Shown: piece after piece, positions 13,589 to 57,489 of the stretch | Layout: each line of letters opens with the position of its first letter | Position numbering within the stretch: position 1 is the first letter of the stretch | NCBI RefSeq assembly: GCF_016432865.1 | Contig: NC_067402.1 | Span: 299,522,001-299,586,000, forward strand | Source: Antechinus flavipes | Taxonomy: Eukaryota | Reading direction: 5' to 3' | DNA length: 64,000 bases | Notes under the pieces: model-generated | Databases searched by the model: none | The model's input: the letters and a program-made list of their open reading frames with translations, nothing else | What the model was told of the DNA's origin: nothing | Program-made: the position numbers and the translations under genes

Positions 13589-13631
13589 CCTGGAAAGTGA
13601 CTAGAGGCCACTTGAGCCCTTTCCAGTTCTC

Positions 13632-14192
13632 ATGGCTTCTTGTGTCCATACCTCCATCGGTGATTCAGACGGACTCACAACCAAGATGTATAAGTTGGCG
13701 GTGATGGGCACCTGTTCTGTGGGCAAGAGTGCACTGATCATGCAGTTTAGTAGGAATCATTTTGTGACGGAGTATGACCCCACGACCCAAGATTTCTATA
13801 GTAAGGATACAATGGTGGACGAAGAGCAGTGTCAGCTGGACATCATGGATACCACAGGCAATGGAGCATTTTATTATCTGAGGGATGAGTCCATAAGCTG
13901 GGGAGAGGGATTCCTCTTGGTCTATGCAGTGAATGACCTCTACTCTTTTGAGAATGTGAATTTCTTCTGGGACATTCTGCAGTGGCTCAAGGGCACCGAC
14001 CGCGTACCCGTGGTGTTGGTGGCAAACAAAGTAGACGTGACCAACAGGCTGGTGGACCCCACAATGGGCCAGGAGGTGGCCAGGAGCTTCGGGTTCCCTT
14101 ATGTGGAGACCTCAGCCAAGACTGGACAAGGTGTGGAGCAAGCCTTCCATGAGCTGGTTCGAGAAATTCAGAGGAAGCGAGCTGAGGAGTAA
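13632..14192 (+). CDS. Ras-subfamily small GTPase (ERAS-like architecture), copy A; 186 aa, C-terminally truncated, no CAAX
   Basis: All G boxes present: GTCSVGKS, T35, DTTG, NKVD, ETSAK. Collinear with HRAS at an offset of 16. A TAA at 14190-14192 precedes an in-frame tail LKILPNTEQKEACGCKCCTIQ* ending at 14258. Confidence 0.82.
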   Translation: MASCVHTSIGDSDGLTTKMYKLAVMGTCSVGKSALIMQFSRNHFVTEYDPTTQDFYSKDTMVDEEQCQLDIMDTTGNGAFYYLRDESISWGEGFLLVYAVNDLYSFENVNFFWDILQWLKGTDRVPVVLVANKVDVTNRLVDPTMGQEVARSFGFPYVETSAKTGQGVEQAFHELVREIQRKRAEE

Positions 14193-14996
14193 CTCAAGAT
14201 TCTCCCTAATACTGAGCAGAAGGAGGCCTGTGGGTGCAAGTGTTGCACCATCCAGTGAACAGGTACACCCTTATCCTGATCCTGCCCCCTAATTCCCCTC
14301 TCCCCTGGCCTAGAATATCTCCAGATCCCCTGGCCACTCCCCAGCCTTCAAGACCTTCATCTGGACCCTTCCTTCTGCCTGCTCTTCACTTCCAAGCCCT
14401 TTTGGGCCTTTTAAACAGGAGCCACTTGGAGGGACCCGTCTGTGTTTCTATATTAAGAGTTTTGTTTTGGATTTTTCCTTTTGATTCGCCTTTTGAGCAG
14501 GAATGACTTAAGTCAATGCCTGGATATCCTGAACAGGCAAGGAAAGACTCCATTTCTCCTTGAGTGCGCAGCCTCCCCCAGCCTCTCTGGCTGCCAGAGG
14601 CCCCAGAGAAAGCCAACTTCCTGGAGGCTTTCTCTCCAGTCCGACCCTCATCTTCAGCAGCCTCCTCTGCCTTCCTAGAGGCCATCTGTGGGGTTTTCTT
14701 TATTGAGCTTTCTCTTGCTCTCCCAACTGAGACCCTGCCTCCGGAGACCAGGGCAAAGGGGTTCTCTCTCCTGCCCCTGGACTTGGTGTATTTGCTGTCT
14801 GGAGCCAGGTCACCACCCCTGTTGTGTCCCAGAAGACCTTGTTTGTGGTGTTGGTGAGGAGCCCTGCTCTGAACTGGTCCCCATTCAGTGACCTTAAAGA
14901 CCAGACCGGAGGGGTGGGGGGGAGGAGGGATTTTTTTTTTTTGTTACTCATGTTGAGCGTGTTTGTTTTCAACTTGCTTATCATCTGGAGCACTTT

Positions 14997-15611: not shown

Positions 15612-15617
15612 AATAAA
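15612..15617 (+). terminator. Polyadenylation signal of Ras-like gene A
   Basis: AATAAA followed by a GT-rich downstream element (gttttggtttgtttatacgtgtgtttctgg). Conserved in B (34330-34335) and C (49206-49211). Confidence 0.6.
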
Positions 15618-17220: not shown

Positions 17221-17229
17221 CTTATCTTA

Positions 17230-18420: not shown

Positions 18421-18436
18421 TACATGTGCGCGCATG

Positions 18437-18476
<40 letters not shown>
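18421..18476. repeat. Alternating purine-pyrimidine tract (GC)n/(CA)n
   Basis: tacatgtgcgcgcatgcgcgcgcacaca... is uninterrupted alternation. The paralog lies at ~37141-37188. Confidence 0.9.
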
Positions 18477-18478
<2 letters not shown>

Positions 18479-26161: not shown

Positions 26162-26201
<40 letters not shown>

Positions 26202-27638: not shown

Positions 27639-27915
27639 CCCTTTGGCTTCCTTAGTGGCTACCAGAAAAATCAGTGAAAAGCCAAGGGAGAGATGAGGGA
27701 TGGAACAAAAGGGGTGGGGAAGAACAGGACCCGCAATCACTTTGTAATATTCGGATGGCCAAGCCCCTTGCTGAACCAACTGCTCCGAGGCCAATTATTG
27801 AAAAGTCCCCGGCTTCTATGCACGGATTTCATAAAGCAGCTGCTCTTGCCCATCGTTGCAGCCATTGTTGGCTGTATCTGGATAAAAGATTTGCGGTGTT
27901 TCCAACTTCCTCCAG

Positions 27916-28696: not shown

Positions 28697-31600
28697 CTTT
28701 AGAGGCCCTGGCATAATCCCCCCTGGTAGGGGGTGACTGGTACTGAGAGAGGAGAGAAAATAAGGGAGCAAGAGATAGATCCCTTCGGTAGAGAGTTTAA
28801 CTCGGAAGACTTCAGTAAATAATGGCCTGCTTTGTCTTCTGCCCCATGGAAGTACTCCATACATGAACTTGTACATATTTGTGAAATTATTTGAAGTAGA
28901 TTATGAACAGAGAATTATTTATGGACATATGAAATAATTATGTTTATTAAAATAAATAATAAATAAAAGAATAGATTCTACAATTCTAAATGTACTTTCT
29001 CTTTTTTCCTTTCCTCTCTGCCCTTGAATGGAGAATCTCTTATTCTCCAAGAATAAGATTCTCTTGGCGGGAATATCATTCTCAGGGAATAAGTGATCTG
29101 TGGGAAGTCATTTTTTGAAGACCCATTTTATGTATGAGGAAGGGAAGTATCAAGTAAATGTGACATCTTGCCTGGGGTTGTGACTTTCCCCAAGAAAGCT
29201 TATCTTGCTCTGAGTGGATGCAAGATCATTTGGGTTTGCAGATTAATGGAGACATTTTTGGTGATTTTACATAATTTTACTGGGTTCATTCAGGTCAAAC
29301 AGAGTTCACTCTAGTCACACTAAGCTGGCCTGACAAGTTAGAGAAGTATCAAGTCTTTATCCCAAGAATCTGAATCTGCTCCATCAGACAAGTAGCACCG
29401 GTATCCTGGCCCATGACATTCTATATAGCAGGGGCAGGTAAAAAACGTGGGTAAAAGGTATGGGAGATGTGGAAGAGGAGAGAAGAGGGAGCTCATGGAA
29501 CATGACCCTAATTTTTTTTCTGTAAAATGAAGTATAAGGTTCTTAGTTGAGAGAGTTGAGGGAGGGAAGCAATGAAAGGGTTGAGGAGAAGTGAGCAAGT
29601 CTGGGTGATCTGCTGTGGAGAGTGGGAGAGGGAGCCAGTGAGGGTGATCTATTTTCTTGGAGTCACAGGGGAGAGTTGAGTGCCAGGTGGATCCCAAGGC
29701 TATTCAACAAGGATGAGCATCTCTGATGTGAGGGCTTGCCAAATTGTTCGACATGTATTTATAGTGTTACACTTTGAATGTCAAACTTTTTATTGAGTCA
29801 TTTGTTTGAGAGGATAAGAACAATTGGTGAAGTACTCTGTAAAAGTCAAAGCTGCTTCAACGATCCCCTAGGATGCTTTTCCAGGTGAGCCCCAGTCTGG
29901 GCCTGGTCTAAGGGGCCTCTCCCTCTCCCAGAGGCCGGCTCTCTCCTATCCAGCCTATGTGTGGCCTGGTGATCCAGTATTTATAGGACCAGGGTTGTTC
30001 ATCCGCAAAAAGGATCCCCGAGTTAGGGTTCAGGCAGGTCATGGACCGCTTCTGATGTTTCAGGGTAAAACAATTCCCAGCCATGTGCAGGGGAAAGGCT
30101 CCCTAGATCAGCATCCTATTTATAGCAGAAAGCCCCAGGCAGTCGGAGTAGATAACCCACAAGGTGCTCCATAAACAATCGGTTCCTTCAGAAAAAGAGA
30201 GAGAACTGAAGGGAGGAGGAGAGTGGAGGTGGGGAAAGGGAAGAGAAACACCTAGGAAAGGGAAAGAGAAGATGTAAACAAGAGAGCAAGGTGGTTTTTC
30301 TCCTTGGAAACCAAGTTAGCAATTGTGCCCTCCTTGAATTCTTATGGAAATTGCCACAGTGCCTAGGGGGCACTGGATTTGAACCTCCAAGAAAAATAAC
30401 TGGCTTGGGAATTTCTACAGCAAGCCCCAGGATCTTGGGTTTCCTTTTATCAATCAAGCTTGGAGGGCAGGAAGAACCTGGAGGGTGAAGGCTGTCCCAT
30501 GCCCCAACCTCAAGCAGATCTGCAAAGTTTTCTGAGATCTTTCCAATCCTGAACTTCGACCTAGATTTCTAAGCCTTGAATGGGGGTGTAAACGAGCCAT
30601 TACTGAAATTTTCTGATACTGATTCAGAAAGGGAACAGCTTGGAGGAGGAAGGATCACGAATAATCACACTCAAAGCAATGGTGCATAAATCTGAGAACT
30701 TAATTATTGGTAGGAGAAGAATGGTCTGGAATGGTCAAAGTTTGGAAAATGGAAAGTATTTTGGCAGAAATTAGGTTTAGACCAATGACTTACAGCCAAG
30801 ATATTCCTGAGCGCTGTCCCAGATATCAATGTGTGAGCAAGGTCAAATAAAGGGAACGGATGCATTCCCTAGGACAGAAAGCAATTTCTGAATATTTCTC
30901 TCTTACGCCTTTTTGCCCACAAATTATAGCCAGAGAACGAGTGCAGATTCTAACAATGGGGTTTAGAGTGGTGATTAAGGGTGTGAAGTGCGGATTGGGC
31001 AAAAGAAAGCTAGGGTGACAAAGCTTTCTTTTTCCCCTGGGGCCTGCAGGACTGAGGACTTTAGTGCGCACTGTCCTTTGGTGCAGAAACACTGGCTCTT
31101 GGACCTTCATCCTTACCTCAGAATCCTAAGGGCAGAACTATGCTGGCCCCAGGCTATATTGTGAGGCTGGGGCCAATAACCCTTGTGGTACATGTAGAGC
31201 TTCCCCAAACTCCCAAGGGTGGGGTGTCCTGAGCTCCTAAAACACGGCCACACGGGACGCTCAAAGCTCCAGCAAGGGTAGACTAAGAGTTCCCTAAGGC
31301 GCTTGTACTGAGCGGTGGGGCTCCCCAAATGCTTTTAGGGTGGAGCTTCCAAAAAGAAAGAAGTTCCTCACACCCTAAAGGAGTGGGGGCGTGGTTCCGC
31401 AGAGTCTTTGTGGCCTAGGGGCGGGGATCTCCAAATCACTCTTTAGAGCCCTAGCACTGAGCAGGAAGAGGACCTCTACTCCATTTCTTATTGTACAACT
31501 CTTAAAGACTATACCTGAATGCGACCTGACTGGGTATTTTTACAGCTCCGAAACGGTATGTAGAGGCCAGCTGATTAGTTCATGTTAGCGGGATGTTCTG

Positions 31601-32351
31601 GGTGCTCATTGAGCCCAGTCTCAGTTAACAGCAATGGGGTGGGGTGGCAAGTGGATCCCAAGTTAGTGCCATCTTGGACTGCATCAATGCGGGAGGTATT
31701 GACGGAGCTCGGCTCCTCGTGGGGCCGGATTAGTGCGGGCAGTGCCGCTGGGCTCGCCTCCCTCCCCCCACCTTAGTTGCCTGAGCCCATACACTTTGGG
31801 TTTAGATGCAGGTTGAGATGGGGGAGCCCAGTTTACAGCCGAGCCGGCCAGGGACTCTCGGCCCCTTTGATGCAGGAGCTGCAGACCCGGCAGCCGCCCA
31901 AACCGAAGCTCTTTGGGCTACATTACTGTGGAGGAGCGTGGCCTGTAGAAATAGTTAGCATTCTCTGGCCTCCTAGAACCTTCGGAATTGACCGCGGGGT
32001 CTTCTGGTCGGTCGGGGGTTTGAGAAGGGCGCCAGTGAATCCGAGAGTGTCTTGGAGAAGCCGGACAGAATGGGAGGGCCTGGAGCCCACGTGCTCTAAT
32101 GGGTTTGGAATTGGTCAGAAGAACCAGAGGAGTCAGAGATTTTTAGTATCTGAAGTTCTTTCCCTGGGGGGAGGGTTGAACCTTGTTCAGGTGGGCCCAG
32201 AGAGCTGAAAGGGGAGCGGGGAAGAGGTTTGGCAAAGAATTAAAACTGGAGGCCAGAGAAGTGACCTCCTGTGAAATGGGCTGACTTCTTGCAGCTTCTT
32301 CCTTGCAGCCTGGAAAGTGACTAGAGGCCACTTGAGCCCTTTCCAGTTCTC

Positions 32352-32912
32352 ATGGCTTCTTGTGTCCATACCTCCATCGGTGATTCAGACGGACTCACAA
32401 CCAAGATGTATAAGTTGGCGGTGATGGGCACCTGTTCTGTGGGCAAGAGTGCACTGATCATGCAGTTTAGTAAGAATCATTTTGTGACGGAGTATGACCC
32501 CACGACCCAAGATTTCTATAGTAAGGATACAATGGTGGACGAAGAGCAGTGTCAGCTGGACATCATGGATACCACAGGCAATGGAGCATTTTATTATCTG
32601 AGGGATGAGTCCATAAGCTGGGGAGAGGGATTCCTCTTGGTCTATGCAGTGAATGACCTCTACTCTTTTGAGAATGTGAATTTCTTCTGGGACATTCTGC
32701 AGTGGCTCAAGGGCACCGACCGCGTACCCGTGGTGTTGGTGGCAAACAAAGTAGACGTGACCAACAGGCTGGTGGACCCCACAATGGGCCAGGAGGTGGC
32801 CAGGAGCTTCGGGTTCCCTTATGTGGAGACCTCAGCCAAGACTGGACAAGGTGTGGAGCAAGCCTTCCATGAGCTGGTTCGAGAAATTCAGAGGAAGCGA
32901 GCTGAGGAGTAA
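32352..32912 (+). CDS. Ras-subfamily small GTPase, copy B; 186 aa, no CAAX
   Basis: Protein identical to copy A except codon 41 (Lys vs Arg). Same premature TAA and the same intact downstream CGCKCCTIQ tail. Confidence 0.82.
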   Translation: MASCVHTSIGDSDGLTTKMYKLAVMGTCSVGKSALIMQFSKNHFVTEYDPTTQDFYSKDTMVDEEQCQLDIMDTTGNGAFYYLRDESISWGEGFLLVYAVNDLYSFENVNFFWDILQWLKGTDRVPVVLVANKVDVTNRLVDPTMGQEVARSFGFPYVETSAKTGQGVEQAFHELVREIQRKRAEE

Positions 32913-33713
32913 CTCAAGATTCTCCCTAATACTGAGCAGAAGGAGGCCTGTGGGTGCAAGTGTTGCACCATCCAGTGAACAGGTACACCCTTAGCCTGAT
33001 CCTGCCCCCTAATTCCCCTCTCACCTGGCCTAGAATATCTCCAGATCCCCTGGCCACTCCCCAGCCTTCAAGACCTTCATCTGGACCCTTCCTTCTGCCT
33101 GCTCTTCACTTCCAAGCCCTTTTGGGCCTTTTAAACAGGAGCCACTTGGAGGGCTCTGTGTTTCTATATTAAGAGTTTTGTTTTGGATTTTTCCTTTTGA
33201 TTCGCCTTTTGAGCAGGAATGACTTAAGTCAATGCCTGAGTATCCTGAACAGGCAAGGAAAGACTCCATTTCTCCTTGAGTGCGCAGCCTCCCCCAGCCT
33301 CTCTGGCTGCCAGAGGCCCCAGAGAAAGCCAGCTTCCTGGAGGCTTTCTCTCCAGTCCGACCCTCATCTTCAGCAGCCTCCTCTGCCTTCCTAGAGGCCA
33401 TCTGTGGGGTTTTCTTTATTGAGCTTTCTCTTGCTCTCCCAACTGAGACCCTGCCTCCGGAGACCAGGGCAAAGGGGTTCTCTCTCCTGCCCCTGGACTT
33501 GGTGTATTTGCTGTCTGGAGCCAGGTCACCACCCCTGTTGTGTCCCAGAAGACCTTGTTTGTGGTGTTGGTGAGGAGCCCTGCTCTGAACTGGTCCCCAT
33601 TCAATGACCTTCAAGACCAGACCGGAGGGGTGGGGGGGAGGAGGGATTTTTTTTTTTTTGTTACTCATGTTGAGCGTGTTTGTTTTCAACTTGCTTATCA
33701 TCTGGAGCACTTT

Positions 33714-33876
33714 TTTTGTTTTTCTTTTGTTTTCTTTTTTTTTCTGAGGCGATTGGAGTTAAGTGACTTGCCCGGGCCACACTGTTAGGAAATGTTAAGT
33801 GTCTGAAGCCAGATTTGAACTCTAGTCTTCCAAAATTTGGGGCTGATGCTGCAACCTCTGCCCATCTAGCTGCCCC
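33714..33876 (-). mobile_element. Marsupial CORE SINE with TSD (copy of 14997-15158)
   Basis: Same CTGGAGCACTTT TSD and CTAGCTGCCCC end. Confidence 0.9.
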
Positions 33877-34329
33877 TGGAGCACTTTGAATAGCAGTGAG
33901 GGCTTTGGGCGGAATGGGGCTGCCTCCTACCAGCAGGATGCCTTTAGACATAAGTGCTATTAAAATTTATTTTAGCAGCCAGATGCACCCCTTTAGACAT
34001 TGCAAGTTGAATTACTTTAATTGCCTCCAAGAGAAGTGGAGTGGGGGGGCCTGGCTATAAATGTTCTGAGCAGATACCTTACAGCTGCAAGTCAGGTGGG
34101 AGTCTGCTAAGGAGCCTTCTGACAGGGGCATCTTTTGTATTATCTCAGGATTTATGGTGAAAAGGGCAGGGGGTGATTTTCCTGTTTCAGTTAAAAGTAT
34201 TAAGGATTCTAAAAATACCTGTTTGGTTTTAGGGGTGGGGAGTGAATGGGAAGAGGAATTCATTTTAAGGGACTTCCTTCACACTTGGATTCAAAGTTGA
34301 TTCTTTTTCTTTTTCTTGGATTACTTATA

Positions 34330-34335
34330 AATAAA
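34330..34335 (+). terminator. Polyadenylation signal of Ras-like gene B
   Basis: AATAAA plus GT-rich downstream element, as in A and C. Confidence 0.6.
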
Positions 34336-34799
34336 AGTTTTGGTTTGTTTATACGTGTGTTTCTGGTAGTTTCTTATGGGTTGATATGCTTGGGGTAGGA
34401 ATCACATGAGGATAGTATGGCCTAGTGGAGAGAGAACTGGGTTTGGGAGTGAGAGTGTTGTAGCTGTGGGACCTTGGTTTTCAGTTTTCTCACCAGTAAG
34501 AAGTGGGGGAGGAGAAGGAGAGGGTTGGTCTAGAATCTCAGATCCCTCTTAACTTTACCAGTAGAGGGGGTCTAAATCTATGAAGCTCCGTTCAATGGGA
34601 TGATAGTGATCCCTAGAAATACTTTTATCCATCATCTACACATCAAGTGTCATAATATTTATCTCTGATTCTATCATCTCTGTAATAATTAATCATCTCT
34701 ATTAATGTCATCACTTATTATAGCCCAGTCCTATATCATCTATTATCTCTCATCTTTTTATGTAGTTGTCATTTCTCTCTACACACTCCCTCCACCCCA

Positions 34800-36440
34800 T
34801 TTTTAATTTAACATGATCAAAAATACTCATTTTGCATTTCATAATGTTCTCTACTTCTTTGTCCAAAATTTCCTCCCTTCTGACAAGGCAGACTATTCCT
34901 TGTTCTCCTAATTTGCCTATATCTCCCTTTATATTGAAATCATGAACCCATTTTGACCTTATGTTGGTGTGTAGGGTATTAGATATTAGTCAATGCCTAG
35001 GTTTTGTGCCATAGTATTTTCCAATTTTCCTAGCCATTTTTATCCAATAGAAGTCTCAGCCCAGAAACTGGCATCTTTGGGTTTAATCAAACAATTGATC
35101 ACTATAGTCATTGACCATTTTGTCTTGTATACTTCATCTATTCCACTGATTCTCTACTCTTAGTCCAGCCAATGATTTTAAAGACTGCCTCTTAATAAAT
35201 ATGGGATTAGGTCCAGTATGGCTAGGCAACCTTCTTCTTCAGCATTCATTTTACAAGATTTTGAATTCCCAAGTTATCTTCCTCCTTCTTTCCTCTACCC
35301 TCTTTTGGAAGGCAGCTATGCTCACCACTATACCACCAACGCCCCTCTACACTCTTTTGAAGAAGAGACGTAGTTTGATCTCTTTATATCTGAGTTATCA
35401 TGTAAGACACAACTCCACATTAGTCACAGTGTGAAAGAAGAACCTGATTAAAAGGAAAAAATGAGAAAAGAAAAACAATGCTTCAATCTGCATTAAGAGT
35501 CTGTCAGTTCTATATCAGTTCTTTGCAGGTGTCTCAGATCATTCTGTTGCAGAGAAGAGCAGAATTTCTCATAGTTGATCATACAATGTTGCTGATGCTG
35601 TGCACAATGTTTTCCTGATTCTGCTCATTTCACTTTGTATGAGTTTGTACAAGTCTTTCCAGGTTTTTCTGAAATCTGCCTGTTCATTTCGTAGTGTACA
35701 ATAATATTCCTTTATATTCCTATAGCACAGCTTATTCAGCCATTCCCCAATTGTTGGGCTTCCCTTCAGTTTCCAATATTTTGCCACCCTGAAAAGGACT
35801 CCTATAAATATTTTTGCATATTCACATATATGTTTATGTATTTATATCATTTCCTTTTTGTGATTTGTGACATTTATGTCCTTTCCTTATCTCTTTGGGA
35901 TACAGACCTAGTAGTGGTATTGCCCAGTCAAAGTGTATGACTTATCTTACATTATGTATAATGGAGATAAACTAGAAGCTTTTCCCATAAATTCAGGGTG
36001 AAACTGTGATGTTCACTGTCACCACTTCTGTCTGACATGGTATGAGAAATGTTAACTGGCACGAAGATGAAAAGAAAATTGAGGGAATAACTATAGAAAG
36101 TCAAGAAGATTCACAATTATCACCTTTGCAGGTGATATATTGATGTACCTAAAGAACTTAATTCAGGTAAAAATTAATTGCAATAATACTTTTAGCAAAT
36201 TTGCAGGAAACAAAAATATCCACACACATCACTGACATTTTAAACTAATACCAATAAATATAGGAAACTAAAGAGAAATATCACATAAAATCACTATAAA
36301 ATATATAAAATAATTTGGAATTTCCCTACCAAGATAAATACGTAAGAATTATAAAAATACAACTGCAAGTAACTGTGTATTTGCACAGCCAAATAATTGG
36401 AAAAGTTATATATTAATTGCTCACAAAATTAAATAAAATG
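34800..36440. mobile_element. LINE-1 fragments (antisense 34800-35940, sense RT fragment 35950-36440)
   Basis: Copies of 16080-17220 and 17230-17720. Confidence 0.8.
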
Positions 36441-37148
36441 GTTGCTGGCAGATGTGTGCCTGAATGCAGAGTACAGTATTCATATTAACATTTTGTATTA
36501 GGTACTAGTAGCATCCGATAGTATCAATTGAGGAAAAGGAGTTATTAGTGCTGTTATTAGTTACTCCCATTGCTCTAGGGATTTCTGGGAGCCAATGAAA
36601 GAAGGGTTTTTTGGGTAATCTCTAGAGCCATTCTTGGAAGATGCAGAGCTTAGAGTCTAGCAGAGCTTGTGCCTACCTTGTGGTGTGAGGGCCACCAGGC
36701 TAATCCTCTGGAGAAGAGTTCTTACATCTTTCCTATTTTTGTGTCTTTGCATACCCATATTTTATGATAAAAATTATTCTGCTTACTTCACTGTCTTTGT
36801 TAATATAAATCATTCTGCTCACTTTACTTTATTTGTTCATAAAATTTTTCCTAAAACAATCCATTTTGTCACTTTTTACACAATATCATATTACATCATA
36901 TACAGTATTGCATTCATATACTAAGATTTGTTTAAAAATTAACCCACATTTGATAAGTACTCTATAGTATACATTTCCTATAATTTTATGGCCATATGGG
37001 TTACTTTTCTCCTTTCATCTCAATGGATATCTTTGGTAGCCAGAAAATACTCACAGAGCAGTGACATTTTAGGTATAGTTCCAAATTGCTTTACAGGTTG
37101 GCCTATATATATGTATATGTATAATGTCTATAGGCATCAGTACATGTA

Positions 37149-37192
<44 letters not shown>

Positions 37193-38129
37193 ATAGATAT
37201 AACCAGCAGTCTGTTTCCATAGCAAAGATAATTGGCATTATCATTGTGGCTGGTGTGGCTAGCCTCTGTCCATGGTCCTGGGTTATTCTAAAAAAATAGC
37301 CACCTCATTTCTAGGAAAGATTTTAGACATGGAAAAAAGGAGATGGAGGGAAGCATATTCTCAAAGGAGAATAGGGATTAGGAAAGACTTCTGGTAGAAG
37401 ATGAGCTTAGCTGGGATTTGAACAAAGCTAGAAAATAATTTGTCCTTAATCACTTCAATACACTTAGAGGATATTGGAAAGTATCCACGTGACTTATAAA
37501 TCCAGGTCTCAGCTGCACAGGTTATTTCCATGTTAGTGCAGATCCATGTCATCAAACAAGGATAAGGGGAAATCTGAGTCTTCTGAAAAACTGGCAACAA
37601 TTATGAGGAATACACAGAAACAGAAGTTTTGAAGAGAAGAACAGACTCACTGGGGATTTTAATCACAGAGGAAAGCTATCTATGGGAGAACCAAGAATCA
37701 AATTCCAAGTGGTCTGCCTCACTTTTCCTTGCTCATAGGCACGCTTTATACTCAACTTTCCCAAGTAAAAACAATACAACATCTGTCCACTTTGAAAATT
37801 TGAAGTTGGTGTCTTCTCCACCAGAAAATAATCAGTTCAGAAACTGTCTCTTCTAGGAGAAGGGCTCCTTTCTCTCTCTCTTCTTTAGTCCTATCATATT
37901 GGACTAAGAAGGTCCTCTCCTTTGGCTTATTGAAGAGAAGTCATGACTTAGTGAATATTACTATAGTGGCAGAAACTAGGTGAATCCTACAGTCTGTTTC
38001 CATAGCAGAGAACATTTGGAAAATAAAGTGAAGGTTTCAGTGCCTAATGTTGCTAACCCTTGTCCATGGTCCCGAATTGTCTAAGAAAGTGGATGCCCTG
38101 TATCTAGGTCAGCTGAGTCCCTAGAAAAA

Positions 38130-38498
38130 TCATGCACTTGTTTCTACTGGGTTTATACCCCAAAGAGAACTAAAGAAGGGAAAGGGACCTGTATGTGCCA
38201 AAATGTTGGTGGCAGCCCTGTTTGTAGTGACTAGAAACTGGAAAATGAATGGATGCTCATCAATTGGAGAATGGTTGAGTCAACTGTGGTATATGAATGT
38301 TATGGAATATTCTTGTTCTGTAAGAAATGACCAGCAGGATGAAGACAGAGAGGCTTGGAGAGACTTACATGAACTGATGCTAAGTGAGATGAACAGAACC
38401 AGGAGACCATTATATACCTCAACAACAATACTGTGTGAGGATGTATTCTGATGGAAGTGGATCTCTTCGATAAAGAGATCTAACTCAGTTTGAATTAA
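38130..38498 (+). mobile_element. LINE-1 ORF2 C-terminus/3' UTR, sense, truncated by a rearrangement junction
   Basis: ORF 38203-38451 (MLVAALFVVTRNWKMNGCSSIGEWLSQLWYMNVMEYSCSVRND) is the L1 ORF2 C-terminus. It abuts the Ras fragment directly. Confidence 0.9.
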
Positions 38499-38669
38499 TT
38501 CGGGGTCCCTTATATGGAGACATCAGCCAAGACTGGACAAGGTGTAGAGTAAGCCTTCCATGAGCTGGTTGGTGAAATTCGGAGGCTGCGAGCTGAGGAG
38601 GAGCTCAAGAGTCACCCAAATACTGAGCAGAGGGAGGTCTGTGGGTGCAAGTGTTGTACAATCCAGTGA
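38499..38669 (+). pseudogene. 5'-truncated Ras-like fragment (last 56 codons) with an internal stop
   Basis: FGVPYMETSAKTGQGVE*AFHELVGEIRRLRAEEELKSHPNTEQREVCGCKCCTIQ*. TAA at 38550-38552. Followed by ~680 bp of paralogous 3' UTR. Confidence 0.9.
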
Positions 38670-42850: not shown

Positions 42851-43207
42851 GTAGGCTAGGAAAAATTGGGGAGTGAGACCATCCAATATGGGGAAGGCCC
42901 TGTGGCTTCCTTAGTTGCTACCTGAAAAATCATAGTGAAAATACAAGGGAGGGGTAAGGAATGCAACAAAGAGGGTGGGGAAGAACAGGATCCGCAATCA
43001 TTTTGTAATATTTGGATGGCCAAGCCCTTTGCTGAACCAACTGCTCCGAGGCCAATTATTGAAAAGTCCCGACTTCTATGCAAGGATTTTATAAAACAGC
43101 TGCTCTTGCCCATCGTTGAAGCCGTTAATGGCTGTCTCTGGATAAAAGATCCTGCAGTTTTGTCTACAAGAAGAGCTTCCCCCTCCTCCGTTTCTAACTT
43201 CCTCCAG

Positions 43208-43980
43208 ATGACAAAGGCCCATTCTCTGGGGAATGGCTGTCCCAGAGCAGCCAGAAATCCTCACACCCCGACTGCAGTGACTCTGAGGCCTCCTCTGGAA
43301 GGGAAGGCCGAGGTCCGCGGGGCCTTGCGGGAGACACGGTTCCTTCGGGTGCCGATATCTCTGAACCACCCTCTACAAGTGTCGGTTCCCCAGACCTACC
43401 TGCCATTGGAGGTGGGAAGATCTCAAATCCAGGTCTCTGGGTGAGGAAATTTCTCCGGACATCAGCAGGGGTCACTGCGGACTGGCCGAGGGCCCGGAAA
43501 TCCCGCCCCTTCGACAGCTTTCGCCACCAAGCAGATCAGCACGCTGGAGAGCTCCTCCAAACGCCTGCACTAACTGGGAGGGGCAGAGAGGCGAAAACTG
43601 GCGGGAGGGATGCAGCTGTCGCAAGTTCAGATCAAAACCTAGCTCCAAAGTCGCCGCAAGAGGTTGAAACGCCAGTTGCAGCATTGGGGCCCCCCGACTC
43701 CCCTCCAGGCTTCTCCCTCCACTTTTACAGCCCCCTGCCCCAGTGCTCAGCACCAGCGCCGCCGCGGGCCTCCAGTACATGTACCCCGGTTGGCCACAAC
43801 TCGGGAGCTCCGAGCTTGCCAGGAGCCTTTTGCCGCTGCCCTGGTTCTCCCCCTCTGCCCCCTCTGCCCTTTCCTCGGCTCCTGCAAAGTTGCCCCTCCT
43901 GCCATCGCGTCAGTGCTGGCTCGTTTGCTAAGCGGTTGTCCCGACCAGGCCTCCTTCCTGAGCGCAATGAGACGGTAGAG
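43208..43980 (+). pseudogene. VENTX: VENTX-like homeobox processed pseudogene, copy C
   Basis: ATG ACA AAG GCC followed by the same 1-nt frameshift. Shared TAA at 43571-43573 and an extra TAG at Trp48. C-terminal LSTSAAAGLQYMYPGWPQLG resembles human VENTX YSTSSCLANGLQLLCPWAPLSG. Confidence 0.85.
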
Positions 43981-46488
43981 GCCTATAATCCCCCCTGGTG
44001 GGGCTGACTGGTACTGAGAGAGGAGAGAGAATACGGGAGCAAGAGACAGATCCCTCCGGGAGAGAGTCTAACTCGGAAGACTTCAGGAATTAATGGTCTG
44101 CTCTGTCTTCTGCCTCTTGGCAGTACTCCATACATGAACTTGTACATATTTGCGAAATTATTTGAAGTGCATTATGTATAGAGATTTAGTTATACACATA
44201 TTAAATAGTTATATTTTAAACAAATAAAAAATAGCTTCTACATTTATAAAAGTGCTTTGTTTTTTCCTTTCATCTCTGCCCTTGAATAGGGAATCTCTTC
44301 TTATTTTGAGAATAAATCTTACCAGTTACATTCCACATGTTTCCTTTTCTCTGTTGGCCGATTCCCTTCTTTCTCTATTCCTCCTTTCCCTCTAAAATGC
44401 TTTCCTTGTCTGCCTCAAGTCCCTACAGAATATTGTTATTTGACTGTGTGTGACTCTAAACTGGCCTGAAAAGTTAGAGAAGCACCGAATCTTTATCCCA
44501 ATTATCTGAATCTGCTCCCTCTGACAAGTAGCACCGGTATCCTGGCCCATGACATTCTATATAGGAGGCCCTAGTCACAAAGGTGGGTAAAAGGTATGAG
44601 AGATGTGAAACAGGAGAGAAGAGGGAACTCGTGGAGAATGCCCTTAACTTTTTTCTGTAAAAATGAGGTATAAAGTTCTTAGTTGAAAGAGTTGAGGGAG
44701 GGAAGCAATGAAAGGGTTGAGGAGGGGTGAGCAGGTTTGGGAGATCTGTGGAGAGGGAAAGGGAGCCAATGAGGGTGATCTATTTTCTTGGAGTCACAGG
44801 GGAGAGTTGAGTGCCAGGTGGATCCCAAGGGTATCCAAGGAGAATCCAAGCATCTCTGGTGTAAGGGCTTGCCAAAGTGTTCTGGGTACATTACAAGGGT
44901 GTTACACCTTGAACGTCAAACTTTTTAGTGAGTCCTTTGGTTGAGAGGATGAAAATAATTAGTGAAGTACCTTGGAAAAGTCAAAGCTGCCTCAATGAGC
45001 CTCGATAAAGGCTTTTCCTGGCAAACCCGTCTGGACTTTGCCTAAGGGGCCTCTCCCTCTCCCAGAGGCCGGCTCTCTACTATCCAGCCTATGTGTGGCC
45101 TGGTGATCCAGTATTTATACGAACAGATTTGTTCATCCGTAAAAGGATCCCCGAGTTAGGGTGCAGGCAGGTCATGGACCGCCTTTGATGTTTCAGGGTA
45201 AAACAATTCCCAGCCATGTGCAGGGAAAAGGCTCCCTAGATCAGCATCCTGTTTATAGCAGAAGGCCCCAGGCAGTCGGAGCAAATAACCCACATGGTGC
45301 TCCATAAAACAATCTGCTTCTTTAGAAAAAGAGAGAACTGAAGGGGGCGATGAGTGATGGTGGGGAAGGAGGAGAGAAACGCGTTAGGGAAAAGGGAGAG
45401 AAGATATAAATAAGACAAAAGGAGGCATTTCCCCTAGGAAACCAAGTTAGCAATTGTAGCCTCCTTGAAATCATTATGGAGATTGCCACAGTGCCAGAGG
45501 GCGCTGGCTTTGGGCCTCCAGTAAAAATAGCTGGCAGGAGAAATTCTACAGCAAACCCCAGGATCCTTGGGCTTCCTATCAGCAATCAAGCTTGGAGGGC
45601 AAGAAGAGCTTGAATTGTGACGAATGTCCCATCCTCTGACCTCAAGCAGGTCTGCAAAGTTCCCTGAGATCTTTCCAATCCTGAAATCTGAGCTAGATTT
45701 CTAAGCCTTGAATGGGGGTGTAAACGAGCCATTACTGATATTACTTGATGCTGATTCAGAAAGGGAACAGCTTGGGAAGAGGAAGCATCATGAATAAGGA
45801 CACTCAAGCCAATGGGGAATAAACCTGAGAACTTAATTCCTGGTAGGAGAAGGCTGTAATCCTCTGGAATGGTCAAAGTTTGGAAAATGGAAAGCATTTT
45901 GGCAGAAATTAGGTTTCGAACAACGACTTATACCCAAGATATTCCTGAGCGTTGTAAAGGGAACGGATGCATTACCTAGGACAGAAAGCAATTTCTGAAT
46001 ATTTCTCTCTTATGTCTTCTTGGCCCACAAATTATAGCCAGAGAATGAGTGCAGATTCTAACAATGGGGTTTAGAGTGGTGATTAAGGGTGTGAAGTCCG
46101 GTTTAGGCAAAAGAAAGCCAGGGTGACAAAGCCTGCTTTTTTCCCTTGGGCCTGAACGACTGAGGACTTTAGTGCGCACTATCCTTTGGTGCAGAAGCAC
46201 TGGCTCTTGGACCTTCATCCTTACCTCAGAATCCCAGGGGCAGAACTACCCTGGCCTCAGGCTACATTGTGAGGTTGGGGCCAATAATCCTTGTGGTACA
46301 CGTAGGGCTTCCCCGAACTCCTAAGGGTGGGGTTTCCTGAGCTCCCAAAACACTGCCACATGGGATGCTCAAAGCTTCAGCAAAGGTAGACTAGGGTTTC
46401 CAGCTGGCTCTCGTAGTGAGGGGTGGGGCTTCCCAAAATCTTATGGGTGGAGGTTCCAAAATGAAGGAAATTCCCCCATCCCAAAGGC

Positions 46489-47460: not shown

Positions 47461-48087
47461 ATGGCTTTTTGTGTCCATACCTCCATAGGTGATCCAGAGA
47501 GACGCCGAACCAAGATGTATAAGTTGGTGGTGATGGGCACCTGTTCTGTGGGCAAGACTGCACTGATCATGCAGTTTGCTAAGGATCATTTTATGACCGA
47601 ATATGGTCCCACCATCCAAGATTCCTATCGGAAGCACACAGTGGTGGATGAAGAGCAGTGTCACCTGGACATCATGGATACCACAAGCACTGAAGCATTT
47701 TATTGCCTGAGGGATGAGTCCATGCACCGGGGAGAGGGATTCCTCTTAGTTTATGCAGTGAATGACCTCTACTCTTTTGACAATGTGAATATCCTCTGGA
47801 ACCATCTACAGGGAATCAAGGGCAACAACCGTATACCCGTGGTGTTGGTGGCCAACAAAGTAGATGTGACCGACAGGCTGGTGAACCATACAATGGGCCA
47901 GGAGGTGGCCAGGAGCTTCGGGGTCCCTTATGTGGAGACATCAGCCAAGACTGGGCAAGGTGTGGAGCAAGCCTTCCATGACTTGGTCCGAGAAATTTGT
48001 AGGCTGCGAGCTGAGGAGGAGCTTAAGAGTCTCCCTAATACTAAGCAGAAGAAAGTCTGGGAGTTCAAGTTTTGCACTATCCAGTGA
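47461..48087 (+). CDS. Ras-subfamily small GTPase (ERAS-like architecture), copy C; full-length 208 aa with CAAX (CTIQ)
   Basis: Uninterrupted ORF with GTCSVGKT, YGPTIQDSY, DTTS, NKVD, ETSAK and terminal CTIQ*. Confidence 0.92.
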   Translation: MAFCVHTSIGDPERRRTKMYKLVVMGTCSVGKTALIMQFAKDHFMTEYGPTIQDSYRKHTVVDEEQCHLDIMDTTSTEAFYCLRDESMHRGEGFLLVYAVNDLYSFDNVNILWNHLQGIKGNNRIPVVLVANKVDVTDRLVNHTMGQEVARSFGVPYVETSAKTGQGVEQAFHDLVREICRLRAEEELKSLPNTKQKKVWEFKFCTIQ

Positions 48088-49205
48088 GCAGGTACACCCT
48101 TATCCTGATCCTGCCCCCTAATTACTCTCTCACCTGGCCTAGAATACCCCCAAATCCCCTGGCCACTCCCCAGCCTTTAAGACCTTCATCTGGACCCTTC
48201 CTTCTGCCTGCTCTTCACTGCCAAGACCTTTTCCCCAATTTCAGGATTTCTCCAGGAATCTCTTAGTGGGAGGGAGGGAGGGCTGCGTTTCTCCCTTAAG
48301 GCCTTTTTGGATTTTTGCTTTTGTTTCCCCTTTTGAGCAGGAATGACTTCCTCAGTGCTTGGGTATTCTCACCAGGCAAGAAAAGACTCCATTTCTACTT
48401 GAGTGGGCAGCCTCCCTCTGCCTCTCAGGCTGCCAGAGGCCCCAGAGACAGCCAGCTCCCTGGCTGCTTTCTCTACAACCTGGTTCTCATCTTCTGCAGC
48501 CTCCTGTGTCTTCCTGGAGGCTGTGTGTGGGATTTTCTTTATTGGGCTTTCCCCTCCTCCCCCAAGAGAAACCTTGCCTCCAGAGACCAGGGCAAAGTGA
48601 TTCTCCCTCCTACCTCTGGATTTTGTTATTTGTTGTCTGGAGTCAGGTCACCACCCCTGTCGTGGCCCAGAAGATCTTGTTTGTGGTGATGGTGAGCAGC
48701 CCTGCTCTGAAGTGGTCCCCATTCAGTGACCCTCAAGACTAGACTGGGAGGATATGGGTAGGGTTTTTTTTTTGGTTACTTACATTGAGCGTGTTTATTC
48801 TCAACTTGGTTTTCATCTGGAGCACTTTGGATAGCAGCGAGGGGTTGGGGTGGAATGGGGCTGCCTCCTACCAGCAGGATGCCTCTAGATTTAAGTGCCA
48901 TTAATATTATTATTTCTGTTTTAGTAGCCAGATACACCCCTTTAGACATTGCAAGTTGAATTACTTTAATTGCCTCCAAGAGAAGTGGAGTGGAGGGGCC
49001 TGGCTGTAAATGTTCTGAGCAGATACTTCACAGGTGCAGTTCAGGTCTGCTTAGGAACCTTCAGACAGGGACATCTTCGTATTATCTCAGGAGTTCTGGT
49101 GAAAAGGGCAGTGGGTGATTCTCCTGATTCAGTATCAATGATTTTAAAGCTACTTGTTTGGCTTTTGTTGGGTTGATGATTTTTCTTTTTCTAGGATTTC
49201 TTATA

Positions 49206-51700: not shown

Positions 51701-52000
51701 TTTTTTTCATCCCGATGAGTTTTTTTTTTTTTAAACTTCTCTTAGATTTTTTTGGTAGTTTGATGGACACGGCCCTGAATAAGTAAATCAAACAGAATGT
51801 ATTTAAAATCAAGAGCTAATATTATATATAATGGAGATAACGACAACCTTTTCCCATAAATTTAGGGTGAAACAATGTTGTTCATTGTCACCAGTTCTGT
51901 TTGATACGGTATGACAAATTTTGACTGGCGCTAATATTAGGTGCTTAGTAAATATTTGACAGATTTTTATTGAAATCCCAAGATGTATCTCTTTGAATAT

Positions 52001-52570
52001 GAGGTCTTCCCACCTTCAAATCCAAGTCCCTGGGTGAGGAAATTTCTCCGGACATCAGCAGGGGTCACTGCAGACTGGCCGAGGGCCCAGGCCTGGAAGC
52101 CCCGCCCTTCGGACGGCTCTCGCCACGAAGCAGATCAGCACTCTGGACAGCTCCTCCAAACGCCCGCACTAACTGGGCGCGGCAGAGAGGAGAAAACTGG
52201 CGGACGGGATGCAGCTGTCTCAAGTTCAGATCAAAACCAGCGTCCAAAGTCGCCGCAAGAGGCTGAAATTGCAGGACTGGGACCCCCCGACCCCCTTCAG
52301 ACTTCCCCCTCCACTTTTACAGCCCCCTGCCCAGTGCTCGGTACCACTGCCGCCGGGGGCCTGCAGTACGTGTACCCTGGTTGGCCGCAGCTCCGGGGCC
52401 CGAGCTTGCCAGGAACCTTTTGCCGCTGCCCTGGTTCTCCCCCTCTGTCCCCACTGCCCTTTCCCCGGCTCCTGCAAAGTTGCCCCTCCCACCATCGCGC
52501 CGGTGCTGGCTCGTCTGCTAAGCGGCTGTCCGGACCAGGCCTCCTTCCTGGGGGCGATGAGACTTTAGAG
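52001..52570 (+). pseudogene. VENTX: 5'-truncated VENTX-like homeobox pseudogene, copy D
   Basis: LRTALATKQISTLDSSSKRPH*LGAAERRKLADGMQLSQVQIKTSVQSRRKRLK, with the shared TAA at 52170-52172. Paralogy with the intergenic spacer continues to ~54500 but stops before a Ras gene. Confidence 0.83.
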
Positions 52571-55222
52571 GCCTATAAGCCTCCCTGGTGAGCCTGACTG
52601 GTACTGAGATAGGAGAGAGAAAAAGGAAGCAAGAGACAGATCCCTCCGAGAGAAAGTCTAATTTGGGAGACTTCAGGAAATAATAGTCTGCTCTGTCTTC
52701 TGCCCCATGGAAGTACTCCATACATGAACTTGCACATATTTGTGAAATTATTTGAAGTAGATTATGAACAGAGAATTTTTTATAGATAGAATAAATTTGG
52801 TTTTTAAATAAATAAATAAAAGAATAGCTTCTACAACTGTAAAAATGCTTTTTCTTTTTTCCTTTCATCCCTGCCCTTCAATGGGGAACCTCTTCCTATC
52901 TTGAGAATAAATCTTGCCAGTTACATTCCTAATGTTTCCTTTTCTCCCTTGGCTGATTCCCTTCTTTTTCTTCTCCTCCCTTCCCTCTAAAGTGCTTTCC
53001 TGGTCTGCCCCAAATCCCTACAGAATATTGTTATTTGACTGTGTACTCTAAACTGGCTTGAAATTTAGAGAAGCACTGAATCTATATCCCAAGAACCTGA
53101 ATCTGCTCTGACAAGTAGCACCACTATCCTGCCCCGTTATATTCTATATAGGAGGCCCTGGTCACAAAGGTCACAAAGATGTGAAAGAGGAGAGAAGAGG
53201 AGGCAAATGGAGAGTGGCCTTAACTTTTTTTTTTTTTTTTTTTTTTTTTGCAAAAATGAGGTATGAAGTTCTTAGTTGAGAGAGTTGAGGGAGGGAAGCA
53301 ATGAAAGGGTTGAGGAGGGGTGAGCAGGTTTTGGAGATCTGTTGTGGAGAGTGGAAGAGTGAGCCAATGAGGGTGATCTATATTCTTGGAGTCTCAGAGG
53401 AGAGTTGAGTGTCAGGTGGATCCCAAGGGTATCCAAGGAGGATGAGCATCTCTGGTGTGAGGGCTGGCCAAAGTGTTCTGAGTACATTCATAGTGTGACA
53501 CCTCTAACATCAAACTTTTTAGTGAGTCATTAGGTTGAGACAATGAAAACAATTGGCAAAGTGCTCTGGAAAAGTCAAAGGTGCCTCAATGAGCCTCAAT
53601 GGTGGTTTTTCCCAGCAAACCATGGTCTGGACTTTGTCTAAGGGGCCTCTCCCTCTCCCAGAGGCCGGCTCTCTATTATCCAACCTATGTGTGGCCTGGC
53701 CATCCAGGATTTATATAAACAGATTTGTTCATCCACAAAAGGATCCCTGAGTTAGGGTGCAGGCAGGTCATGGACCGCCTCTGATGTTTTAGGGTAAAAC
53801 AATTCCCTGCCGTGTGCAGGGAATATAGCAGAAAGCCCCAGACAGTTGGAGCACATAACCCACATGGTGCTCCATAAACAATCTGCTCCTTCAGAAAAAG
53901 AGAGAGAAGAAGTGAAGGGGGGGGGGAGGAAAGTGGGGGTGGGGCAAGAGAAGAGAAACACCTAGCAAAGGGAGAGAGAAGATGTAAACGAGAAAAAGGA
54001 GGTATTTCTCCTTGGAAACTATGTTAGCAACTGTGCCCTCCTTGAAGTCTTTATGGAAATTGCTACAGTGCCAGAGGGCACTGGATTTGAGCCTCCAAGA
54101 AAAATAGCTGGCTTGGGAAATTCTGCGACAAGCCCCAGGATCTTGGGTTTCTTTTTATCAATCAAGCTTGGAGGGCAAGAAGAGCCTGAAGGGTGAAGGT
54201 GTCCCATCCCCGGATCTCAAGCAGGTCTGCAAAGTTCTCTGAGATCTTTCCAATCCTGAAGTCCGAGCTAGATTTCTAAGCCTTGAATGGGGGTGTTAAA
54301 GAGCCATTACTGAAATTATTTGATGCTAATTCAGAAAGGAAACAGCTTGGAAGAGGAAAGATCAGGAATAATCACTCAAAGCAATGGTGGATAAATCTGT
54401 GAACTTAATTCCTGGTAGGAGAAGGCTGTAATTCTCTGGAATGGTCAAAGATTGGAAAATGGAAAGCATTTTGGCAGAAATTAGGTTTAGACCAACAATT
54501 TATACCACAATCCACAATCCACAACAAGTTCCAAATGATGAAAACATTAAGTTACACCATTCAAAAAATAGAATCACATTAGTAAATTTTTTTTTGGTTG
54601 AGGTGGGGATCTAAAGTGTACATTCAGGACATGTTGACAACTTGGTGATGTGTTGGTTGGTTTTAATGAACTATATTTCCCCTTTTTTGAGTAAATGAAA
54701 GGATAGTGTGCTGTGTAAGGAAATGGGGGAGGCTGCTGTATGAGAGTGATATGAAAACATAAGATAGAGATTTTATAGGAAACTTAAAAGGAATGTGTTC
54801 CAATACCCTAGTTTTCCACAAGGAAAGTTAAGGATGGTTGAATGAGTGAAGCCTTTTAAGGTTCTGGTAAAGTGAAGAGACCCATGGCCCTGGAAATGAT
54901 TTAATCGGCCCAGAGAAAAAAGATCAGCACCTCTGCTTATTACGGATTAAAAAAAGGAAGATAGAGGAAAAAATGCTTTAAAAGGCAGTACTTTCAATAA
55001 CCCCAAATCATTCCACTTTCTTCTAAGGAGGCACTTAAAAATTCTTATAACTTCAGCCCTTTTCTGTTGGCACATTTAAAAGAAAGCCCTCTCAACACAG
55101 CATTTTCATTCTTTTTGTTGTTGTTGTTTGCTTTCATTTTATTGTTTCTCTCTCTCTTTTTTTTACTGGTTTGATTTGATTATTCTTGTGTGGCACAATA
55201 ATTGTATAAATATGTATAGCTA

Positions 55223-56018: not shown

Positions 56019-56405
56019 TGTGGAGGCTTCCTAGCGAGATAGCAGAAATGAGAGCAGGATTTAGAGACCTTCGGGGCTCCGCCTGAGGCGGTCGAGGATC
56101 CGGGTCCTTGGCCCTCTGGATTTCTCCAGAGTCTCTGGGAAGGAGAGCAGTTTTCAGCGGCAGCCACGCCTGACGATGGACGCTCCATTCGGCCACAGGA
56201 GAGTAAGTCTGGATGTCTGTGGGGAGCCGCAATCTCTAAGCGGATTAGCAAAGCCCAGCACTGAGATCAGATGTGCACAGCACTCAGGCAGGAACAACAT
56301 CTCCTTCTATGATTCTCATTAGTGGGCTGCTATTTCCGATATTATTTATAATTGGCTTGATTATAGCACTAAACATGATTTAAAAAAAATCTGGTGACCA
56401 GAGTC

Positions 56406-56995
56406 GGAGAGACAGAGAGAGAAGCAGAGAGAAAGAAACAGAGACAAAGAGAGAAAGAAACAGAGACAGAGATAGAGAAAGAAACAGAGGGACACACAGA
56501 GAGAAGCAGAGACAGAGAAAGAAACAGAGAGAGGGACAGAGAGAAAGAAACAGAGACAAAGAGAGTAAGAAGAAGAGACAGAGAAAGAAACAGAAAGAGG
56601 GACACAGAGAGAGAAAGAAACAGAGACAAAGAGAGAAAGAAGCAGAGACAGAGATAGAGAAAGAAATAGAGGGACACACAGAGAAGCAGAGACAGAGAAA
56701 GAAACAGAGAGAGGGACACACAGAGAGAAACAGAGACAAAGAGAGAAAGAAGCAGAGACAGAGATAGAGAAAGAAATAGAGGGACACACAGAGAGAAGCA
56801 GAGACAGAGAAAGAAACAGAGACAGACAAAGAAACAGAGACAGACAAAGAGAGAAAGAGATAGAGACACAGACAGAGAGAGAGAAAGAAACAGAAACAAA
56901 AAGAGGAGCAGAGACAGAAAGAAACAGAGACAGAGAGACAGACAGAGAGAGACAGAGAAACAGACAGACAAAGAGAGAGAAAGAGACAGAGCAAG
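56406..56995. repeat. Purine-rich compound tandem repeat (AGAGAC/AGAAAGAAAC units)
   Basis: About 590 bp almost free of T on the + strand, with recurring ~18-nt AGAGACAGAGAAAGAAAC units and higher-order blocks. Confidence 0.92.
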
Positions 56996-57489
56996 CAAAC
57001 AAGAAGTTAGCAAAGAACCAGGAGCAGGAAAATAAATTTAGAGAGAAAAGTTGAGAAATTAGGTGCTTGAAGTCAGTGATATGCTCATTTTTATGGCTTG
57101 GAGATAGAGTTGAGGAGTGGTCTGACTGACTTTGTGCCCAGATGCAGTGTCCATAGTTCTCTGGGCAGAGCTGAAGGGGGGAATGTGTGTGAGATGGGGA
57201 GAATCTTCCAGAGGCAAGTTGTTAGTGGCAGATGCCCGATTCTGATCTGCGCCTGCAGCCTTAGCATCCTGCTCACATCCGGTAAATGGGGCAGCATGGC
57301 CTAAGGGAAGAAATCCAGCACTTCTAACAACACCACTCCCACGGCCAGGTGGATTTAGGCTTATCGTTACTTTCTTCCTAAGGGCTGCACCCACAGCACT
57401 CTTAACTCTCCTACCTGGATTTTATATTTTAGTTTTCTGTCAACTTTCTTTAAGTTGAAAATAAAAAACCAAGCAAACAGAAAGTTAAG

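Follow-up and report, generated by a model that had tools for sequence, protein, structure and literature searches.

The output of a Ras protein depends on the membrane that it occupies and on its residence time there, and the textbook second signals are palmitate or a polybasic stretch. HRAS and NRAS are palmitoylated at Cys181 and have their CAAX Cys at position 186. RIT1 and RIT2 have no CAAX box, and in their C-terminal basic-hydrophobic cluster Trp/Phe residues bind the membrane together with Lys/Arg, with no acylation. A Leu in the X position of the CAAX box is of the geranylgeranyl type. The logic of the Ras second signals has been laid out previously, including the KRAS4B tail with its charge of +8 (PMC9882654). 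Farnesyl-only Ras proteins exchange rapidly between the cytosol and endomembranes, as reported for depalmitoylated HRAS and NRAS (PMC2171405), and paralog pairs that differ in their second signal include RhoA vs RhoB/TC10, Rap1 vs Rap2 and KRAS4A vs KRAS4B (Michaelson et al. 2001, PMC2193662).

The MgRas (marsupial gonad Ras) family was described by Petrohilos et al. (Mol Biol Evol 2026, PMC12866920). In the main text of that paper the MgRas genes are presented as genes with one coding exon that occur only in marsupials, form a clade sister to ERas and have multiplied in dasyurids within 'cluster 2', close to the end of dasyurid chromosome 5. Expression is given there as almost exclusively gonadal, with detection in gonads for only 4 of the 23 antechinus genes, and dN/dS tests are named as future work. 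The terms CAAX, palmitoyl, farnesyl, prenyl, cysteine, hypervariable and C-terminal are all absent from that main text, relative to which the tail classes, the Cys-free tail of the orthogroup described here and the selection analysis are new.

The window, that is, the whole stretch of 64,000 nucleotides of Antechinus flavipes DNA that was analysed, contained no runs of N and held four Ras copies. Copy C (47461..48087, + strand) was recognized from the ORF list, Pfam, PDB and AlphaFold2 (AF2) as an intact single-exon MgRas gene of 208 uninterrupted codons plus stop, with the canonical Ras core beginning at M19 (47515), and its product was 100% identical to an annotated A. flavipes protein on CM028221.1. 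It is a Ras-family GTPase (Pfam Ras, E=2e-45) whose best PDB matches were KRAS and HRAS (about 180 bits); the GxxxxGKT, T51, NKVD and SAK G-boxes were all found, and the DxxG box, DTTS, was a partial match only. The AF2 model, which used the family alignment as input, presented a canonical Ras fold (mean pLDDT of 88.8) with helix 5 extending to ORF residue 190. Copy C belongs to the MgRas family of PMC12866920: it is a single-exon Ras domain in a marsupial-only clade expanded in Dasyuromorphia, its closest database proteins were all marsupial and labelled 'NRas-like' or 'ras-like', matches above about 44% identity came from marsupials only, and many paralogs were found in A. flavipes, Sarcophilus harrisii and Sminthopsis crassicaudata. 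It lies at 299.56-299.58 Mb of the 300.48-Mb record CM028221.1, and its dunnart and devil relatives likewise map close to the ends of their records (314 Mb and 317 Mb, respectively). A sequencing-run search found no RNA runs on record that contain the copy C stretch; the contigs mapped to it were short and DNA-like, extended also over the flanks and came with paralog cross-mapping, and contigs of two related organisms (X8 record 22 and X9 record 30) crossed the copy C tail, each with a single difference.

The last 22 codons of the copy C ORF encode ELKSLPNTKQKKVWEFKFCTIQ, followed by TGA, and constitute a hypervariable tail (codons 187-208 plus stop, 48019..48087, +; ORF, codon alignment and AF2) that reads GAG CTT AAG AGT CTC CCT AAT ACT AAG CAG AAG AAA GTC TGG GAG TTC AAG TTT TGC ACT ATC CAG TGA. 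Within it, codons 200-204 (TGG GAG TTC AAG TTT, 48058..48072, +) form an aromatic ladder, W-E-F-K-F, which according to the codon alignment, parsimony and a clustering test is derived and stands where C-G-C-K-C was. Each cysteine was replaced through one base (TGT>TGG for C200W, TGC>TTC for C202F and TGT>TTT for C204F). The CAAX box CTIQ comes next (48073..48084, +) and is unchanged in three of three orthologs, the only difference being a synonymous ACT/ACA. A preliminary description of this DNA had read W200, E201, F202, F204, K195, K198 and the CAAX residues C205-T-I-Q in the same way, and had stated that the CAAX box was spared, as is the case in copy C and both orthologs. Residues 194-208 were disordered in the AF2 model (pLDDT below 50, without secondary structure). 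Docking of the aromatic tail on the G domain was considered and rejected, given that the model presents none; a tail predicted to be undocked and disordered is as expected for a membrane anchor.

Positions -8 to -1 before the CAAX Cys hold zero Cys in copy C and both orthologs, and one to three in the other clade-A CAAX tails. Copy C thus has none of the Cys, at least one within about 6 residues upstream of the CAAX Cys, by which a palmitoyl-type tail is defined, whereas a CAAX box of the farnesyl type (X = S, M, Q, A or C) is present, as CTIQ followed by a stop, in the three orthologs. Judging from position and motif, the ancestral cysteines are predicted to have been S-acylated, and C205 of copy C is predicted to be still farnesylated. 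Rhes/RASD2 ends in CTIQ and is farnesylated at C263; a literature search found no paper pairing CTIQ with farnesyl, and papers using the C263S farnesylation mutant bear on the Rhes/RASD2 ending only indirectly.

A maximum likelihood tree was built with the G domain only, the tail being left out so that it could not drive the grouping, and comprised marsupial proteins only, ERAS and the canonical RAS genes not being in the tree. Copy C was recovered in the arrangement (Sminthopsis P0003,(copy C, Sarcophilus P0078)) with support of 100/98 and the topology of the species tree; P0002 and P0078 are models of one devil gene, P0002 being the older. The tails of copy C, P0078 and P0003 read NTKQKKVWEFKF-CTIQ, NTEQKKVWEFKF-CTIQ and NTKQKKAWELKF-CTIQ, respectively, with WE(F/L)KF-CTIQ as the motif of the orthogroup, and a word search limited to residues 165-208 returned only this orthogroup, the WE(F/L)KF tail being found in no other cluster. 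The sister clade (Antechinus P0004 and Sarcophilus P0009; support 95/91) carries the tail VC(R/G)CKC-CTIQ and has the unusual switch-II motif DTTSTEAFYCLRD in common with copy C; both clades are nested among dasyurid clade-A paralogs, whose usual tail is ACGCKC-CTIQ. C200 was invariant among the 14 background paralogs examined, which bears out the proposal that the Cys-rich tail is ancestral. The preliminary description had also set random variation of the orthologous tails, including loss of the CAAX Cys, against its own interpretation; the Sarcophilus and Sminthopsis tails share the change, are constrained and keep the CAAX Cys, so no such variation was found.

Deeper in the family the tail is G-C-G-F-K-x-C (brushtail possum, wombat, gracile opossum and the CTIL subclade), with Phe at -3 and a single Cys, at -5. 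F202 thus restores the residue of the deeper family and counts as a reversal, and the -5 Cys is the old and conserved one. The dasyurid subclade with CTIL rather than CTIQ (P0026, P0029, P0031 and P0037) has a strongly basic tail (+4 to +5), and its Sminthopsis member has lost the one upstream Cys.

Fitch parsimony on a gap-free codon alignment of seven genes assigned C200W, G201E, C202F and C204F to the stem of the copy C orthogroup, as four single-base changes spanning 13 nucleotides. They took place after the lineage of copy C and the Cys-tailed sister paralog had diverged, but before Sminthopsis branched off from Antechinus and Sarcophilus. The preliminary description had counted E195K and E198K as part of the same change, and the gain of lysines as part of a switch. 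According to parsimony, the ancestor that copy C shares with the Cys-tailed sister clade had both K195 and K198, so the lysines precede the Cys losses and do not belong to the copy C change. Residue 195 is E in the devil ortholog, and G201E introduces an acidic side chain.

Some further substitutions were observed in the G domain. Copy C has T-C-S at HRAS positions A11-G12-G13 (window 47536-47547, codons 26-29) and T-S-T-E-A-F at HRAS positions 59-64, with A59T, G60S and Q61T (window 47677-47700, codons 73-80), as well as D33G and E37Q in switch I. The loss of the DxxG glycine (G60S) is shared with the sister clade P0004/P0009 alone, and D33G (D49G) was placed on the same stem branch as the tail change.

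By parsimony, about 10 nonsynonymous changes fell on the stem branch of the orthogroup, four of them in codons 200-204. A clustering test with 200,000 random placements, scoring a 5-codon window with 4 or more changes, gave P = 0.0026 with uniform site weights and P = 0.004 when sites were weighted by their variability in paralogs; all three upstream Cys codons were struck with P of about 1e-4. The earlier impression that the clustering is hard to explain by chance is upheld by these values, although a single multinucleotide mutation could give such a cluster, and four changes in 13 nt arising as one event could inflate the statistic; the clustering therefore shows non-independence rather than selection.

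Among the three orthologs the whole-gene omega was 0.24-0.33 and dS was 0.14-0.22. Tail codons 187-208 accumulated 3 nonsynonymous changes vs 13.8 expected from the synonymous rate if neutral (P = 6e-4), and codons 200-208 accumulated 1 vs 5.6 expected (P = 0.024); for the five ladder codons alone the small counts (1 vs 3.1 expected) were not significant (P = 0.18). Identity between orthologs was 92-95% in the tail and 84-90% in the flanks, and the sole ladder change was the conservative F202L in Sminthopsis. The tail and CAAX box of copy C have been kept by purifying selection in three genera since the change. The check for excess nonsynonymous change that had been proposed for the tail accordingly came out as a stem excess in codons 200-204 with purifying selection afterwards.

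We consider it fairly probable that copy C represents a conserved loss of S-acylation sites in which a farnesyl group plus the aromatic ladder replaces the palmitoyl signal, and that the resulting anchor is not of the KRAS4B type. The alternative that survives best, which we nevertheless hold to be unlikely, assumes no new function: a multinucleotide mutation, or relaxed constraint, would have drifted to fixation and left a farnesyl-only Ras that works or fails like Rheb or the HRAS C181S/C184S mutant. Rapid evolution is usual in Ras hypervariable regions (mean variability in the family of 2.2 in the tail vs 1.35 in the G domain), and other paralogs, which lack one or two of the upstream cysteines, lost them individually many times, so that constraint on positions -3 and -1 is not strong across the family. 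An entire clade, moreover, has lost its tail to a stop codon; the proximity of the four changes and the non-significant constraint on the five ladder codons also agree with drift. It is harder to reconcile with C200 being invariant in the other clade-A paralogs sampled, with all replacements being F or W (chance of about 0.01, or about 0.09 for any aromatic, calculated from the codon table under a simple mutation spectrum), with W200, E201, K203, F204 and CTIQ being identical in three genera at the dS given above, and with the deficit of nonsynonymous changes over the whole tail.

The preliminary description had likened the change to a switch from a palmitoyl second signal to a KRAS4B-like basic one. 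Its first half stands, as the loss of all candidate palmitoylation cysteines is derived and conserved, but the basic half does not. In a KRAS4B-like arrangement, a polybasic/hydrophobic signal would drive copy C to the plasma membrane by electrostatics, and the tail does lack Cys, keeps its CAAX box and, in Antechinus and Sminthopsis, has four Lys among the 14 residues that precede the CAAX Cys. The net charge of those 14 residues is, however, +3, +3 and +1 in the three orthologs vs the +8 of KRAS4B (PMC9882654), and the Lys/Arg run of a strong polybasic tail (about +8) is absent from copy C, which has E201 inside the motif. The sister tri-Cys tails are equally or more basic (P0004, +5; P0009, +2), the devil has E in place of K195, parsimony makes both K195 and K198 older than the split from the sister clade, and the lineage-specific G201E brings in a negative charge. 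The lysines of the copy C tail are thus neither lineage-specific nor fully conserved, and we regard an electrostatic anchor of this kind as quite improbable.

What is specific to and conserved in the copy C orthogroup is an aromatic/hydrophobic ladder at -5, -3 and -1, the positions of the lost cysteines, whose side chains would lie on one face of an extended chain. On the Wimley-White interfacial scale, with values summed over the six residues before the CAAX Cys, copy C scored about -1.0 kcal/mol, compared with +0.35 to +1.25 for unacylated tri-Cys tails, and the orthogroup had the lowest sum among the tails compared; E201 partly offsets the aromatic gain. Tails that lack Cys and combine W, F or Y with basic residues were also found in P0047, P0048, P0029, P0042 and P0046, in other MgRas clades, so the design recurs and is evidently tolerated in the family. 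A third possibility, that the aromatics form a new protein-binding or chaperone-selectivity motif (for prenyl-binding chaperones or a germline-specific partner), has in its favour the conservation of W-E-(F/L)-K-F including the charged E201 and K203, and the accessibility of a tail that is disordered in the AF2 model, but it matches no known motif and we give it little credence, lipid contact being the simpler reading, given that the replacements coincide exactly with the presumed acylation sites.

The remaining Ras copies of the window differ from copy C in their 3' ends. Copy A (13632..14192, +) is an MgRas ORF of 186 codons ended by a TAA at 14190-14192, and copy B (32352..32912, +) is its near-identical duplicate with the same TAA at 32910-32912, both established from the ORF list and codon alignment. 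In both, the TAA stands directly after ...RKRAEE, 21 codons ahead of the Cys tail, and is followed in frame by LKILPNTEQKEACGCKCCTIQ and a second stop; the Cys-tail remnants behind the TAA (14193..14258, + in copy A; 32913..32978, + in copy B) are not translated. The fourth copy (38499..38669, +) is a 3' fragment with an internal TAA and the tail TEQREVCGCKCCTIQ followed by a stop, cut upstream by an L1-like insertion; an ORF like the 3' end of L1 ORF2 (window 38203-38451) lies directly upstream of it. Given the TAA of copies A and B and the truncation of the fourth copy, copy C is therefore the sole gene of the window that encodes a CAAX tail. This modifies the initial view, which took the Cys tails of the window as coding and counted three tail types: there are one translated tail, two tail-less proteins and one pseudogene, and the 'V' variant of the tail, given as TEQKE-V, reads TEQRE-V in the fourth copy. 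Copies A and B with their upstream ORFs are contained in an 18.7-kb tandem duplication (98.8% identical; window 722-19471 vs 19457-38171), and the unit with copy C (about 41.8-51.6 kb), which matches the A/B unit at about 84% identity in coding and flanking DNA alike, arose by an older duplication.

Copies A and B, together with Antechinus P0017, are members of a tail-less MgRas clade with a common TAA after ...RAEE, which in the devil includes P0014, P0025 and possibly P0024; the shared TAA also lies at L006:2059-2061, L007:2059-2061, L008:2005-2007 and L009:2798-2800. The G domains of this clade are still open, and omega between species is 0.36-0.45. This points to a soluble, CAAX-less form of Ras that has been conserved. 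The post-stop Cys tail was intact and in frame in 5 of 6 tail-less genes (including copies A and B) from two species, and stop readthrough or selection on it was considered, the identity being 92-95% vs 84-94% in the flanks. This was rejected: the identity was no higher than third codon positions predict, changes were distributed 5:5 between third and first/second codon positions, and one devil copy had a second stop in this tail. As the post-stop tail is no more conserved than the flanks, neutral persistence is enough to account for the remnants of copies A and B.

Proline-rich ORFs were observed upstream of each Ras copy and are co-duplicated with them (8973-9677, 27693-28696, 42935-44007 and 51983-52591; locus L005:3001-7802). 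They carry a homeobox helix-3-like stretch, QVQIKTW(L/V)QSRRKSLKRQ, and a Pfam search of the upstream ORFs and of the N-terminal 165 residues of the devil fusion model returned no family. In that NCBI model (XP_031794389.1, P0078) the Ras ORF is spliced to the upstream proline-rich unit. Copy C has the corresponding acceptor, cctccatag/GTGATCC, at 47487/47488; its orthologs and those sister paralogs that were examined conserve it, and copy A has ...atc there. The older devil model, P0002 (UPI00062B3BBA), uses a splice donor GT inside ATC CA/GTGAGC, so that a downstream exon (CTIH-LITTPVVAQK...) takes the place of the final Gln and the stop, and the CAAX box would be lost. Copy C has both this donor and the downstream ORF (window 48081-48090 and about 48640-48742), and the spliced form could be either a real isoform or a prediction artefact. 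A CT-rich low-complexity repeat of roughly 650 bp (window 56361-57013) has long Ser/Leu/Cys/Phe ORFs in three minus-strand frames and internal repeats that are 76-82% identical.

If the farnesyl group and aromatic ladder do replace the palmitoyl signal, copy C would be farnesylated at C205 and no longer S-acylated. Lacking S-acylation, it would leave the palmitoylation/depalmitoylation cycle that moves HRAS and NRAS between the Golgi and the plasma membrane, as follows from established Ras biology (PMC9882654, PMC2171405, PMC2193662). Its second membrane signal would consist of the fixed aromatic side chains at -5, -3 and -1, assisted by a weak and variable positive charge (+1 to +3), and its membrane contact would be weaker and constitutive, unlike an electrostatic plasma-membrane anchor of the KRAS4B type. 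Its distribution would then differ from that of the tri-Cys paralogs, probably with more protein on endomembranes and faster exchange. From its tail sequence, copy C is probably placed on membranes differently from its sister copies.

The MgRas family and the swapping of second signals between paralogs are already known. A residue-for-residue replacement of Cys by aromatics, kept across three dasyurid genera, appears to be new, as does the observation that anchor class (tri-Cys, aromatic, CTIL, or tail-less through a common TAA) is the main difference among the MgRas paralogs. More tentatively, and with doubts that outweigh our confidence, we propose that the MgRas paralogs, which are oncogene-type at positions 12, 13, 59 and 61, are partitioned among compartments by at least four anchor classes (tri-Cys palmitoyl plus farnesyl, aromatic plus farnesyl, CTIL of the geranylgeranyl type, and tail-less soluble), with the aromatics of copy C standing in for palmitates. 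If so, the aromatic ladder would be a third hard-wired Ras second signal, neither acyl nor polybasic, and copy C a natural experiment in which aromatic side chains replace palmitates residue for residue. Should the localization differ, it would make a clean evolutionary case of paralogs dividing function by anchor chemistry, and copy C tail peptides would be simple probes of how far aromatics can replace acylation. The anchor classes suggest that the numerous MgRas copies are not redundant.

In relation to HRAS, NRAS and ERAS, the clade-A MgRas tail C-G-C-K-C-CTIQ is alike, with Cys at -5, -3 and -1, and the spacing between Cys181 and Cys186 of HRAS/NRAS is that of the MgRas -5 Cys; copy C and its orthologs differ in being without any upstream Cys, so that this signal is unusable. 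With KRAS4B, copy C shares a farnesyl CAAX box, the lack of a palmitoylatable Cys and some upstream lysines, but it differs in its charge (+1 to +3 vs +8), in having no contiguous Lys run and in the acidic residue within the ladder. It resembles the farnesyl-only proteins (Rheb, HRAS C181S/C184S and depalmitoylated HRAS/NRAS, PMC2171405) in being, as predicted, farnesylated, unacylated and weakly basic, whereas three conserved aromatic/hydrophobic side chains beside the prenyl-Cys set it apart and should lift its membrane affinity above that of a farnesyl-only tail. As in the pairs of the RhoA/RhoB type, one MgRas duplicate keeps the palmitoyl Cys and the other loses it, and the hypervariable region sets the compartment; in those pairs, however, the alternative is polybasic, whereas in copy C each former Cys position has received an aromatic residue. 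Finally, copy C is like RIT1 and RIT2 in having a tail of Trp/Phe and basic residues without acylation, but unlike them it keeps a CAAX box.
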